A DNA stretch of 64,000 bases from Octopus sinensis (GCF_006345805.1 NW_021831852.1:2373-66372); one strand, 5' to 3'. Shown: positions 10,875-42,551, numbered from the stretch's first letter. The notes: a model not told the origin generated them from the letters alone. Program-made: numbers and translations.

Positions 10875-11374
10875 GTGTGGCTGGTGGACAATGGTACGAC
10901 GACACAGGTGGCGGAAGTAATCTCTTATGTCTACCTAACGACCCCATTTGGGCCAATTATACTACAAAAGTTGAAGAAGGTGGTCACATTTATGGCAGTG
11001 AATATCAACTACAGGATTACGACACCAATACCATCTTTTCTTTTGCTAACGCTAAATCACTTCATGATCACAACGTTCCGTGCGCTGTCTGTTTGACACG
11101 ACAACCTGCTGTTGTTATGACGTTACCAGCCAGAACACAGTGTTACCCTGGTTGGACAGCTGAGTATTCGGGATATTTGATGTCCAGTCTTCACGCAGAA
11201 AAAGGCAGACTAGAATATGTGTGTGTGGACTATGCACCAGAAGCTGATCCAGCTGGTTACAGAAACGAAAATGGAGCTGTATTATATTTCGTTCAGGCTG
11301 CTTGTGGTTCATGGCCATGTCCACCGTATGTCCATGGTCAAGAATTAACCTGTGTTGTATGCAGTAAATATTGA
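10875..11374 (+). CDS. Copy A exon 4, short-chain collagen C4-like Cys-rich domain, intact reading frame
   Basis: ttctag|GT acceptor; ORF 10877-11374 with GGGSNLLCLP, YGSEY, VPCAVC, GYLM, CGSWPCPPY, ELTCVVCSKY; AATAAA at 11486-11491. Confidence 0.92.
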
Positions 11375-11749
11375 ATATAAATTAAATTCGGTTCCATATG
11401 AAAATATCTCTGTGAATTTCAATATATAACATAAAATTTTCAATTTTGTTACCTAATATTTTCTTTAAAGTATGTCTATCGTTACAATAAACTGTTGTAC
11501 TAGTTTACAGAAGATATTCAAACAATACAAAAGAGGCGACGTAGAATGCCAGAAATATCCTCAAAAACAAGAAAAATCTAAATCTGTCGGAATGATTCTA
11601 GAAAACATTTTGTAAGATTTCAGTTTATCAAACTTATCGTTGAAATAAAATGTTATTTTGTTTAACAGTATTTTGTCTTCTGTCTCATGATTCAACAAAA
11701 CCCCAAATAAAGTACCACCATAGAATTATATCAGCTTTTCATCTAATAC

Positions 11750-12350
11750 TCGACGCTACTATCTCAGACATCTTGCTTTTGAAATTACAACTCGGAATCT
11801 GACAATGACAAAGAACCACCACATTATTTAACTCAGAAAACACATGATCGCTTCAAAAACAACAACCAATTACTTCTACACAAACCATTTTATTTGCCTT
11901 TATTAATCAGGGAAGCTTTCCGTTCCATTCTTACCTCATAACTTATAACCTAAATCTAAATCACAACCTTCCCACCTCTCCACAAATTATGACAAAATGA
12001 AACTCTAAGCTCACAACATACACATCATACACTAAACGCTGATATACAAGAATGAGAAAGGAAATCAACCAGAAAAATTGTCTCATTTCAGCAGCAGAGA
12101 ACATCAAATACGACGATTTCTTTCACTCATCTACGTAAACATACCAGAACCGAAGAAAGGATGGATCCTAGAAGCTGAATACATTTCATGCGAAACGAAT
12201 ACAACACCCATAAAAGTGAGAGTAAAGAGAGCAAATATAGTCAGGGCAAGCACGGATGCTGTGTGTAAGAAGGCTGAGATGTTGTGACCGTCACGTTATA
12301 TCCAATAGGATTCATGACAGTATGTTGGAGTGTGTCGAATATTTGTTAGA
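11750..12350 (+). mobile_element. Possible highly decayed Penelope-like (GIY-YIG end) fragment downstream of the gene; also ~43000-43670, ~56600-57240
   Basis: Weak resemblance of WILEAEYI to the GIY-YIG C-terminal motif; no intact ORF. Confidence 0.25.
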
Positions 12351-13135
12351 TAAACGAAGGGTTCGGTTAACAACATCAAGCTGCAATAAAGATTAAAGAT
12401 TATTAATGTTTACTATCCCACTATTATTAGTCTGATGGGTAAATCTGCATTCGCTTCTCTAGATTACAAATATTTTCTTGGTTGTAAATCGTAAACAATT
12501 GCAGAGAATACGGACGCTGGTAGATCTTCAAATTCATCTTTTTATTCAGCGGCATAATTAGACAGTTAAAACGACCGCCATGTGTTTAAGCTGTACAGAG
12601 CATGCGCAGCTAAATAAGCAACCCGCCATTACAATAGGAAAAATTATGGGGCTTTGTTGAAATCTGACATGGCTGTAAGATTTATTTTGTAGCTTATTTC
12701 AAATTAATATTAATTCGAGGGCCAAACAGAGAGTGTTACACACACACACACACACACGCACACACACACACACACATACACACACACATATATATATATT
12801 AAATTAGGTCAAACTATATCTGAGGGGTCTACTATGCTTCATCTAAGAATATTTAATCATAACTGTAGAATTCCGTCGTACATATGCAGTCCATACGGAA
12901 GGTGCACTTGCGAATTGAGTTTCAAATGGGAGACACTGTACCTGTATGTTTTGCTATGATTTATAAAACAAGAAGAAAAATATTCAAAGCTAGTGACAAT
13001 GACTAGCTAAAAATATGTATGAATGTCATTCTTCGGTTTTAATAGAATATTTCTGGCCAACAGAAAGAGAGACGGCTTCTAACTTAGTTCCAAGTATCTT
13101 TCATTGGAATTTCAACAACATGAACAGGATATTTT

Positions 13136-13612
13136 TGTATGTATGTATGTATGCATGTATGCATGTATGTATGTATGTATGTATGTATGTATGTATGTAT
13201 GTATGTATGCATGTATGTATGTATGTATGTATGTATGTATGTATGTATGTATGCATGTATGCATGTATGTATGTATGTATGTATGTATGTATGTATGTAT
13301 GTATGTATGCATGTATGTATGTATGCATGTATGCATGTATGTATGTATGTATGTATGCATGTATGTATATATGTATGTATGCATGTATGCATGTATGTAT
13401 GCAAGTATTTATGTATGTATGTATGTATGTAAGTAAGTATGTATGTATGTATGCATGTATGTATGTATGTATGTATGTATGCATGTATGTATGCATGTAT
13501 GCATGCATGAATGTATGCATGTATGTATGTATGCATGTATGTATGTATGTATGCATGTATGTAAGTTTGTATGTATGTATGTATGTATGCATGTATGTAT
13601 GTATGTATGTAT
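13136..13612. repeat. (TATG)n microsatellite; also ~44488-44697, ~45253-45680, ~46234-46310, ~58066-58910
   Basis: Direct reading. Confidence 0.95.
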
Positions 13613-14146
13613 GTCAGGTCACTTTCGAGTGCTACTGGTAACATGTAACCCAGTACAACCTGTTGCATTGTCGGGTCGTCGGCGACTAAACCGGCAACGC
13701 AACCAAGCTTGCTTGGTGAAGAGGGTGTTTATTGGACATCCTGCCGGATGAAAAACAAAACCCGTCAAAGAGCGGAGGAATTCTTGAGAGTCAACGGCCA
13801 TCCAATATATGTCTTAAGGCTGTATCATGCGCGGGGACATAGAAATAATCGGACTGAATACCCGATCATGCGGTTAAACCACAGGGAGTGAAGGACTCCT
13901 AGCCTTTGTTAGGGCAACCTTCTAGGAGAGGGTAACTCAGGTAACTGGGATAACTCCGACATAAAACCTGCGGCTCAGTGGTTACCAATGATGTTGACTT
14001 ATTCTTCTTTTCGGATTATGGCTGCTGTTGATTAGTGACTGGGATTGACTCAGTGCACATCCTTTCCTCGCTTTAAAAAAATCTTCATGCACAGGCATTG
14101 CACAATAACAACATTGATTAAGCACCGAGCAATGGTCATGCTCGAT
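13613..14146 (+). mobile_element. Non-coding RTE 5'-leader-like repeat between TATG arrays; also 44698-45252, 45681-46233, 58911-59456
   Basis: GGGCAACCTTCTAGGAGAGGGTAACTC...AAACCTG resembles RTE 5' UTRs (from memory); several local hairpins. Confidence 0.5.
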
Positions 14147-40794: not shown

Positions 40795-40846
<52 letters not shown>

Positions 40847-41815
40847 ATATATTGATTCAGATGAATATGTTACTTAAGGTGATTAAAATTAAAATAAGCA
40901 ACGATGATATCCAGAGATAATGCAGTACGTTCGTTTCATGCAACACCAGTTAATTGAACAATGCAATCATTACATCAGTTTAAAATTTAGAGCAATCCTC
41001 GGCTGCTAAAAGACGTAGCATTTAATGAAATTAGAACAGATGGACACATTTGTATAATTATACCTAAAATCCCCAAGAAATTACATAGAACATGTTGTCT
41101 CTACTTCAGCATAGCAGTTACTAAAATTATCAAGAAGACTCAACTTACCATTGATTTTTTGTCTTTATGGGGTCAGTTTTAATTGTTTAAAAATCCTTTC
41201 TATATCTAAGGCTGAGAGAGCATGGGGCAGTATCTGTTAGGGGGAGGGATGAGGGAGTAGATATACATTCTAGTTAGTATAATTATAAAAAAATCAAGAA
41301 TCATTATAAGCAATACCATGAGGTTTAGTAAGGGAAAACTTAAAACAAGATGTTAGCTGATAATTAAGGGGGTCGCACACTGGCAGACTATTGACAATGA
41401 AACGGAATGTCTTATCATATATTATAGTTAAATATTTTAAACAATGTTGCTATGAATACAGTTGAAGTTTAGGGTTTTCCAAAGGATTATTAAGAAGAAT
41501 ATTATAACAAAATGATAGAAATTGTTGAATACTTATTGTATTCATAAGTATTCATAAATTTCTTGATAATTTTATTAACTTCTAAGTTGAAGTAGAGACA
41601 AGCAGTTCTTTGTGTATCTCCTTAACTTCTGGAGATTTTAGGTATAATTATACTAATGTCTCAATCTGTTTTAATTTAATTAAATTCTATGTATTTGTGC
41701 AGCTGAAGATTCCTCTATATTTTAAATTAATGCAATGATTGAATTGTTCAATTAAATGGAGTTGCATGAAACAATCGTACTGCATTATCTCTGGATATCC
41801 TTCTTGCTTACTTCG

Positions 41816-41863
<48 letters not shown>

Positions 41864-42055
41864 GAGAATGCAAATGCACATCTAGGATTTCATGCATACA
41901 GCAACACTGCTTACACTCACATAAGCACTAACACATACACCACAATTCGTTCACACGCGACTAAACATGACTCCTTTTAAGGGTCAAATTGTAATGAATA
42001 TTTCCGTTATTTTGCTTAATATCTTTTTTACTTGATATATTCTTACCAATTCTAG

Positions 42056-42551
42056 GTGTGGTTGGTGGACAACATCAAACCCATACTGGTGGCGGAAGCA
42101 ATCTGTTGTGTTTACCTAACGATCCCATTTGGGCCAATTATACTACAGAAGTTGAAAAAGGTGGTTACATTTATGGCAGTGAATATGAAATATCCCACAA
42201 CTCGAATAAACTCTTTTCTTTTGCTAACGCTAAATCACTTCATGATCACAACGTTCCGTGCGCGGTCTGTTTGACACTACAACCTGCTGTTGTTATGATG
42301 TTACCAGCCAGGACACAGTGTTACGCTGGTTGGACAGCTGAATATTCAGGATATTTGATGGCAGAACATTATGCTCATAAGGGCAGACATGAATATGTGT
42401 GTGTGGATTATGCACCAGAAGCTGATCCAGCTGGTTACAGAAACGAAAATGGAGCTCTATTTATTTCGTTCAGGCTGCTTGTGGTTCGTGGCCATGTCCA
42501 CCGTATGTCAATGGCCAAGAATTAACCTGCGTTGTGTGCAGTAAATATTGA
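42056..42551 (+). CDS. Copy C exon 4, collagen C4-like domain, with a -1 frameshift at ~42461
   Basis: ORF 42058-42525 is homologous up to NENGAL; CTATTTATTTC vs CTATTATATTTC in B; the homologous stop TGA is at 42549-42551; AATAAA at 42662. Confidence 0.88.

Follow-up and report, generated by a model that had tools for sequence, protein, structure and literature searches.

Four variable patches on a predicted NC1-like domain encoded by a tandem gene array in octopods

How does a domain whose cysteine framework hardly changes from one gene to the next come to differ radically at a few short spots? This question is raised by a locus of Octopus sinensis that we analysed as one stretch of 64,000 nucleotides (GCF_006345805.1 NW_021831852.1:2373-66372), called the window below; positions refer to it unless another sequence is named. 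By self-comparison the window is an array of tandem units of about 15.5 kb each, of which it contains four and a half, and each unit carries one gene of four exons on the + strand, with GT-AG introns throughout and consistent phases. An earlier note, made from the sequence alone, had pointed to exon 4 of the genes A, B and C as encoding a receptor-like domain with a near-constant Cys framework and three hypervariable (HV) loops. We think it somewhat probable that the array encodes, in the germline, a repertoire of NC1-like binding domains for display, in which selection maintains the diversity of the loops and gene conversion reshuffles them.

The three patches are present in exon 4 with the motifs, positions and counts that the earlier note had given. 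HV1 reads WYDD in A (10892-10903), FFDH in B (26595-26606) and HQTH in C (42073-42084). HV2 reads QLQDYDTNTI in A (11006-11035), QFELYPTNKL in B (26709-26738) and EISHNSNKL in C (42187-42213), its length varying by whole codons, with C one codon shorter. HV3 reads SSLHAE in A (11183-11200), TARHDH in B (26885-26902) and AEHYAH in C (42361-42378). Between A and C, 10 of the 15 nt that make up HV1 and the next codon are different, as are 8 of the following 99 nt. Over the whole exon, 19 of the 21 HV codons vary among A, B and C as against 22 of the 144 others (Fisher p=1e-11), and the nucleotide difference among the three genes is 48-56% in the HV patches versus 6-9% in the remainder, so that the clustering of variation on a near-constant Cys framework is borne out. 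Compensating frameshifts were rejected, by eye, as the origin of the loop differences, as the loop codons are not shifted copies of each other. The pattern is wider than the window: in 30 octopod paralogs from O. sinensis, O. vulgaris, O. bimaculoides and Argonauta the three patches are entropy peaks, and variation is not evenly spread. The number of loops has to be corrected to four, with HV1b (residues 30-37; A 10964-10987, TKVEEGGH; B 26667-26690; C 42145-42168) equally variable in the 30 paralogs and hardly differing among A, B and C. All four patches lie on the + strand. Besides them, the paralogs have single variable sites at 88, 91, 112, 119 and 141-143, and variation is limited to about 29 of 191 residues.

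The chemistry of the loops is restricted. The richness in His and aromatic residues noticed in the three genes extends to the paralogs: position 7 is aromatic in 29 of the 30, and His makes up 9.5% of loop residues versus 2.1% elsewhere. Cys accounts for 0.1% in the loops versus 6.5% elsewhere, all loop indels are in frame, and one HV3 motif, TAHNGH, is common to Argonauta and O. sinensis. By their in-frame indels, position-specific chemistry, Cys exclusion and shared HV3 motif, the loops are not junk. These features speak against an explanation without positive selection, by which unconstrained loops drift or mutate faster while the remainder is held by purifying selection and homogenised by conversion, the contrast being a by-product. 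Stop codons, too, are excluded from the loops, the HV3 motif has been conserved between octopod families, and real decay hits the framework: in the exon 4 of a pseudogene (L005:1251-1748) the changes are scattered across the framework and include a stop codon and a Cys-to-Tyr replacement. On the other side, the same loops are variable across the whole metazoan family in the alignment consensus, as relaxed constraint would have it. We hold this explanation to be quite improbable.

Rates were estimated from 14 intact exon-4 DNA sequences, which come from seven O. sinensis loci and the window. By the Nei-Gojobori method, nonsynonymous (dN) and synonymous (dS) divergence was 0.055 and 0.21 in the framework and 0.54 and 0.77 in HV1-3, and the scaffold is under purifying selection (dN/dS, or omega, 0.24-0.30). 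In six independent sister pairs, the proportions of nonsynonymous (pN) and synonymous (pS) differences were 0.27 and 0.30 in the loops (pN/pS 0.91) and 0.039 and 0.16 in the framework, and loop pN exceeded framework pS (p=3e-5), as did loop pS (p=0.0016). Loop nonsynonymous change amounts to 1.7-3.5 times the framework synonymous rate, and loop change to about 1.7 times the divergence of the flanks in the three sister pairs measured. Against the framework as a neutral yardstick, and in the measured sister pairs also against the flanks, loop replacement is clearly faster, where drift alone predicts equality. Conversion tracts that homogenise the exon, moreover, should erase neutral patches of 12-30 nt, yet divergence is not raised in the framework codons adjoining each patch (four per side). 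The explanation without selection can point in turn to the mean flank divergence over all pairs, which at 0.35-0.49 is near loop divergence, to the frequency of gene conversion and to the local dN/dS of about 1 that is described below.

In codon site models, M2a was compared with M1a, the likelihood ratio test statistic (LRT) being 101 with the tree of the framework and 76 with that of all sites. For 7% of sites omega2 was estimated at 4.8-5.2, and these sites, alignment columns 6, 8, 37, 46, 47, 49, 105, 106, 108 and 113, nearly all fall within the four patches. With a neighbour-joining (NJ) tree of its own, segment 26-70 (HV1b, HV2) gave an LRT of 15.3 (p=5e-4) and segment 71-166 (HV3) one of 38.1 (p=5e-9). 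A number of results weigh against selection as the cause. The site models were our own GY/MG-type implementation applied to just 14 sequences; segment 1-25 (HV1), on its own NJ tree, gave a non-significant LRT of 3.2, and a framework-only control already gave 8.3. With the synonymous rate left free, the synonymous rate alpha and the nonsynonymous rate beta of HV1-3 were 2.8 and 3.4, taking the framework synonymous rate as 1; alpha differed from 1 (p=6e-6) and beta did not differ from alpha (p=0.37). The values for HV1b were 1.1 and 1.8. In the sister pairs loop pN and loop pS were not different, and local dN/dS within the loops is about 0.7-1.2, not significantly above 1. Loop synonymous change appears raised 1.3-2.8 times, and because of this an origin by mutation or conversion without positive selection has to be reckoned with. 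Per-site fits of alpha and beta, resembling fixed effects likelihood (FEL), were numerically unstable with 14 sequences and were left unused. Of the diversifying selection suggested in the earlier note, then, one part stands, the excess of loop nonsynonymous over framework synonymous change together with the M2a result (omega about 5); a dN/dS above 1 within the loops is not established.

That synonymous and nonsynonymous rates both appear raised in the patches speaks for another rival, a targeted mutational process (local hypermutation, templated micro-conversion or multinucleotide events at the patches) which selection only filters. Many codons differ at two or three positions, and the patches have sharp boundaries with no halo in the adjoining codons, both as such a process would have it. 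A mutator has been proposed for the mature regions of conotoxins. Same-amino-acid codon pairs, however, have a synonymous excess of just 1.3-1.4 times (13.6% versus 10.8%), which is not significant in independent pairs, and mis-apportioned multi-hit codons, like tree mismatch, can produce a high alpha. A sequence feature that would mark the patches was not found either, though no search was aimed at one. Further evidence comes from the comparison of species, which has low power as it consists of the one clear O. vulgaris / O. sinensis ortholog pair (L008:18913-19410 versus L007:21555-22052). Its flanks are 1.9% and its exon 4 is 3.0% diverged, with 4 nonsynonymous and 0 synonymous changes in HV1 and HV1b, which are small numbers. 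Against the 1.9% background the pair has a cluster of 3 nt in HV1 and one of 5 nt at codons 135-138, which would suit targeted mutation, except that the latter lies outside any patch. Micro-conversion or an error of assembly may lie behind this 5-nt cluster. The partners that match best at the protein level in other species were rejected as orthologs, as their frameworks differ by 4-20%. Taken together, a targeted mutational origin of the patches seems to us very unlikely.

How the loop variants are distributed among the genes is seen from the mosaic structure of the array. In the sequence upstream of exon 4, B is almost the same as C while A bears no relation to them; on the downstream side it is A that is almost the same as C, with B the one that differs; within exon 4, site patterns uniting A with B, A with C and B with C alternate every few bases. 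The pairwise homoplasy index (PHI) test gave p=0.014 (p=0.027 for the framework only), and 57-63% of informative site pairs are incompatible. The distance matrices of HV1, HV2 and HV3 are uncorrelated (Mantel r 0.03, 0.17 and -0.03), and the patches of a given paralog differ in their nearest relative, which in the case of A is L7b for HV1, L1a or L2c for HV2, L1b for HV3 and L2c for the framework. Identical loop strings occur in non-sister paralogs, as with the HV3 codons ACC GAG TAT TAT AAG CAT in L2b and L7c. Since each patch has its own genealogy, the paralogs are combinatorial mosaics produced by gene conversion or unequal exchange, and gene conversion in the family is pervasive. Such recombination violates the single-tree assumption, so that the tree-based tests of selection are inflated, a further point on the side of the doubts listed above. 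The family is thus a cautionary case in which standard site models signal strong positive selection despite a local dN/dS of about 1 and rampant gene conversion.

What kind of protein carries the loops? Searched by itself, exon 4 had no match in Pfam or among PDB sequences. A phmmer search returned 161 relatives at E <= 0.001, about 30 of which are the octopod paralogs; the distant ones, from annelids, bivalves, coral and amphioxus, are annotated 'short-chain collagen C4-like', and E values to proteins annotated as short-chain collagen C4(-like) go down to 1e-96 for octopods and are about 1e-29 to 1e-48 for other phyla. A full HMMER scan gave 2677 cluster representatives (50% identity) at E <= 0.001. 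Spongin short-chain collagens were described by Exposito 1991 and Aouacheria 2006, as summarised in PMC5395295; their NC1 is a variant of that of collagen IV, with 7+3 conserved Cys, seven shared with collagen IV and three spongin-specific, and with no HSQ motif (PMC5395295). The octopus ectodomain has exactly ten Cys (one in exon 3 and nine in exon 4), in agreement with spongin when compared by count, not position, and it likewise has no HSQ motif. In an alignment of 91 sequences, nine of these Cys are either invariant or conserved to 90% or more. Going by these sequence relationships, the octopus domain is a member of the spongin short-chain collagen family. Two relatives, P0121 and P0123, have 6-9 tandem copies of the domain in proteins of 3800-3900 residues.

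The octopus genes are not collagens. No Gly-X-Y run of four or more was found in any frame of the window, and the octopod proteins have no run above three triplets (one trivial 3-triplet run) and no Pfam Collagen match; this domain is present in 24 of the 91 aligned relatives, all from other phyla, with 8-23 triplets. A collagen reading of the octopus genes was therefore rejected, and to annotate them as 'collagen' is misleading, since collagen sequence is absent from them. Among the non-octopod relatives, several that lack collagen repeats have weak coiled-coil-type Pfam matches in their N-terminal part, and the family may have swapped the oligomerising region ahead of the domain on more than one occasion.

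In place of the triple helix, the octopod proteins have a hydrophobic stretch near the N terminus. Among 17 full-length octopod models that start with the conserved anchor exon, 16 have a hydrophobic 19-mer at residues 15-33 (Kyte-Doolittle 2.1-2.7), and in two other octopod models the value is 1.8. The stretch, of 17-19 residues behind a basic N-region, is kept from Argonauta to Octopus, and a full-length AlphaFold2 run on a shallow octopod-only alignment (predicted local distance difference test, pLDDT, 55), used for the N-terminal helix only, predicted a helix there. By its position and composition it looks like a type II signal anchor. The predicted protein consists of a tail of about 15 residues, one anchor, a charged linker of about 35 residues and an ectodomain of about 190 residues. 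An N-Y-T sequon is conserved in the domain in the 30 paralogs, and an extracellular location of the domain fits this conservation. The term 'receptor-like' in the earlier note thereby gains support from the anchor and the N-X-T sequon. The sole protein-level trace is one peptide of a paralog in the ink proteome of O. vulgaris (PMC10142993), which suggests a secreted or shed form. The tail of about 15 residues has no recognisable signalling motif, which speaks against a repertoire of displayed binding domains.

Where do the patches lie on the domain? An AlphaFold2 model of exons 3 and 4, based on the 91-sequence alignment, had a pLDDT of 91 and a predicted template modelling score (pTM) of 0.87. 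In a Foldseek search, collagen IV NC1 accounted for every one of the 16 best PDB matches, with probability 0.87-0.99 and E from 7e-5 to 4e-3. With hhalign, human COL4A1 NC1 (its sequence identical to 1LI1 chain A) was aligned at E=5e-5 over VPCAVC...CxxGW..YSGYLM. For the profile of the 91 relatives Drosophila collagen IV was the top PDB match, if a weak one (E=0.26). The assignment to the NC1 fold has to face a Foldseek TM-score of 0.25 with a root-mean-square deviation of 17 Å to collagen IV NC1, and none of the 91 family members matches Pfam C4 (PF01413) at E <= 1. In the model all four patches lie in non-regular segments adjoining strands. HV1 (model residues 32-35) follows strand 21-30 and HV3 (129-134) follows strand 120-129, and as the order of strands recurs from one subdomain to the other at an offset of about 99 residues, these two patches are pseudo-symmetry mates. 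The longest loop, where pLDDT is lowest, contains HV2 (70-79). The hhalign anchor places HV3 at collagen IV residues 146-151; extended gap-free, which is an assumption, it places HV1b at about 69-76 and HV2 at about 83-92 of collagen IV, just before Met93.

These positions bear on another rival, by which the loops are an assembly or docking code. The NC1-like domains would, like those of collagen IV, trimerise and dock head-to-head, and the loops would set which paralogs pair, in cis trimers or in trans between cells, giving a homophilic or heterophilic cell identity like that of clustered protocadherins. Chain selection and trimer-trimer docking are all that the NC1 fold is known to do (PMC6527180, PMC5395295). 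In collagen IV the chloride loop at 74-78, with Arg76, is at the trimer-trimer interface (PMC6527180), and the extended alignment puts HV1b beside this loop and HV2 before Met93, both at that interface, while HV1 in one subdomain is the equivalent of HV3 in the other. The array, with its homogenised scaffold and diverse specificity patches, also resembles protocadherin clusters. The mapping, however, is one alignment of 41 columns at 67% probability, extended gap-free, and neither the tiny tail without a signalling motif nor the secreted or shed form suggested by the ink peptide is what a docking code would lead one to expect. We regard such a code as unlikely.

A germline repertoire kept diverse by selection would work as follows. 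The genes form an octopod-specific family whose products would be small type II membrane proteins, related to the spongin-type NC1, that have lost the collagen triple helix, and the four loop patches, which carry nearly all differences between paralogs, would form a binding surface that is displayed on the cell or shed from it. Selection would hold the paralogs apart at the loops, by favouring new variants and resisting homogenisation. Because the loops would be a putative binding surface kept different by selection, the array could serve as a germline-encoded, combinatorially shuffled recognition repertoire, with non-self molecules or another NC1-like domain as candidate ligands. A more far-reaching proposal is that octopods have a new type of cell-surface recognition repertoire on a collagen-IV-NC1-like scaffold, with dozens of tandem genes and four outward-facing loops that give combinatorial specificities, directed at microbes and other non-self or at paralog-specific NC1-NC1 docking between cells; this we put forward tentatively, and consider it rather doubtful.

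Comparison with known systems shows what would be new here. Spongin short-chain collagens have a homologous C-terminal globular domain, with ten Cys and without HSQ; the octopus proteins differ from them in lacking Gly-X-Y, in having an internal hydrophobic anchor that replaces signal peptide and triple helix, in the large tandem cluster of octopods and in the variation of four loops shuffled between paralogs. Collagen IV NC1 (PDB 1LI1, 1M3D, 5NAX, 8TYS) is the only fold that Foldseek found. Both domains are pseudo-repeats of two subdomains, and the start of the C-subdomain can be aligned (VPCAVC...C.xGW..Y.GY). Identity, however, is 12-18%, the octopus domain has 10 rather than 12 Cys, does not match Pfam C4 and is without a triple helix, and no equivalents of Met93/Lys211 or HSQ were recognised in it.

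Among recognition systems, snail FREPs, bivalve C1q-domain proteins, amphioxus VCBPs and the Ly49/KLR receptors are likewise tandem germline families with a conserved scaffold, loop variation and conversion mosaics, and Ly49/KLR proteins are also type II with a C-terminal binding domain, as predicted for octopus. The octopus fold is unrelated to theirs, no signalling motif and no charged transmembrane residue were found, and the likeness is known here at the level of sequence. Clustered protocadherins, including their octopus expansion, are likewise tandem arrays in which part of the ectodomain is homogenised by conversion and the specificity parts are diverse; the octopus NC1 genes, in contrast, are duplicated whole rather than as variable exons spliced to constant ones, have a different fold and lack a cytoplasmic domain. 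Conotoxins share the invariant Cys framework with hypervariable residues between, and possibly a raised synonymous change, but are short secreted peptides and not a folded domain of 190 residues with an anchor.

To our knowledge, adaptive immunity is absent in cephalopods, which have few known families of diversified recognition proteins. The best-known cephalopod lineage-specific expansions are those of protocadherins and zinc fingers. The present family would be a second large tandem one, with a displayed domain of localised and shuffled variability, and a candidate for non-self or cell-cell recognition. The NC1 fold, known only as an assembly module of basement-membrane collagen and spongin, would gain a new role, here off the triple helix and tethered to the membrane. 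If this is true, octopods would possess in this array an invertebrate equivalent of the FREP, Ly49 or protocadherin type of system, built on a fold not previously linked to variable recognition. In line with the earlier note, which knew of no account of such a variable repertoire in octopus, no description of the octopod expansion, the loss of collagen or the variable loops of this family was found in the literature searched.

The array continues beyond the window. On O. sinensis CM016876.1 the cluster extends over at least 3.95-6.55 Mb (at least 2.6 Mb), with genes on both strands, and the approximately 30 octopod paralogs sit nearly all on one chromosome per species. The structure of four exons agrees with RefSeq and ENA models of O. 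sinensis, O. vulgaris, O. bimaculoides and Argonauta. Within the window, gene A is represented by exons 2-4, genes B and C are complete, unit D has exons 1-3 and unit E has exon 1, all on the + strand. Exon 1 encodes the start codon, the short basic tail and the hydrophobic stretch (SSLIAFGVLLVLTIVIL in B). It is found at 16714-16856 in B, with a 1-nt deletion of the window at 16763, at 29779-29920 in C, with two such deletions (29800 and 29812), and at 61032-61173 in E, the remainder of which lies beyond the window; exon 1 of A is upstream of the window. Exon 2 encodes the charged linker, NRFISKKSLDDKPDDTP in A (6256-6306, with a 1-nt deletion of the window at 6289), and is found at 20909-20960 in B and 36640-36691 in C. 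Exon 3, with the translation PG.GSLYTRWGRTTCPPYSNLVYD, contributes the domain's first strands and its first Cys; it lies at 9166-9240 in A (PGPGSLYTRWGRTTCPPYSNLVYD), 24002-24076 in B and 39527-39601 in C. Exon 4, of 165 codons with nine Cys, encodes most of the NC1-like domain. In A (10875-11374) it is an intact open reading frame of 165 codons and a stop, nucleotide-identical in GCA_006345805.1, and begins with a split Gly codon behind an AG acceptor at 10875, in agreement with the range of the earlier note. Exon 4 of B spans 26578-27076 and that of C 42056-42551.

The frame of exon 4 is broken in the window by a 1-nt deletion in B (about 26743) and another in C (about 42460), both of which the earlier note had read through. 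Are these genes dead? The window was compared with L001 (GCA_006345805.1, CM016876.1:3,974,587-4,034,820), of which positions 26139-60234 correspond to 2975-37044 of the window. Over these 34 kb there are 76 substitutions and 123 indels, mostly of 1 nt, and the five exon frameshifts within the coverage of L001 (6289, 16763, 26743, 29800, 29812) are deletions of the window only, the frames being open in GCA_006345805.1. Since the frameshifts are window-only 1-nt deletions and indels outnumber substitutions, the window is an indel-prone assembly. The frameshifts of exon 4 of B and of exons 1-2 are assembly indels and not pseudogenisation. A pseudogene reading of B was rejected, as its frameshift is absent from GCA_006345805.1, in which the exon is intact, and 100% identical to the RefSeq protein P0009. 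For exon 4 the verdict of an assembly indel is confined to B, as the deletion in C falls outside L001.

Unit D (47490-56304), in contrast, is a pseudogene. Its exons 1-3 (47490-47631, 51723-51775 and 53860-53933) contain a stop and frameshifts, and its intron 3 joins directly to sequence 167 nt beyond the position of the stop codon in A. As the intron runs into post-stop sequence, exon 4 and 167 nt of its 3' flank have been deleted; the breakpoint (about 56303) is clean and directly after the intron-3 acceptor. Two more pseudogenes were found in the O. sinensis cluster outside the window. They are L005:1251-1748, described above, and L002:8564-8950, in which the first 37 codons of exon 4 are lost.

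Some smaller observations concern the gene models and the spacers. In the RefSeq models P0001, P0004 and P0009 the anchor exon is replaced by other 5' exons, which give a different hydrophobic N-terminus (…FSLLIPASSAVPTVFCSLLDLLCC…) and lie at 7645-7707, 22602-22661 and 38044-38106, and at 23337-23408 and 38859-38945. These could represent a secreted isoform, or a chimeric gene model across several units. The spacing of units is irregular, as two intact copies of exon 4 (L001:17020-17517 and 20242-20736) are merely 3.2 kb apart. Intron 1 of unit A contains a direct duplication of 2.5 kb, 97% identical (519-3061 and 2975-5532), that the other units lack. The intergenic spacers hold long (TGTA)n arrays (13136-15842, 44487-45678 and 58065-59894), and a (TG)n array of 0.3-0.6 kb stands immediately 5' of exon 1 (16011-16296, 28732-29351, 46478-47073 and 60063-60613). 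These repeats could promote unequal exchange, and they produce the GC-skew spikes.

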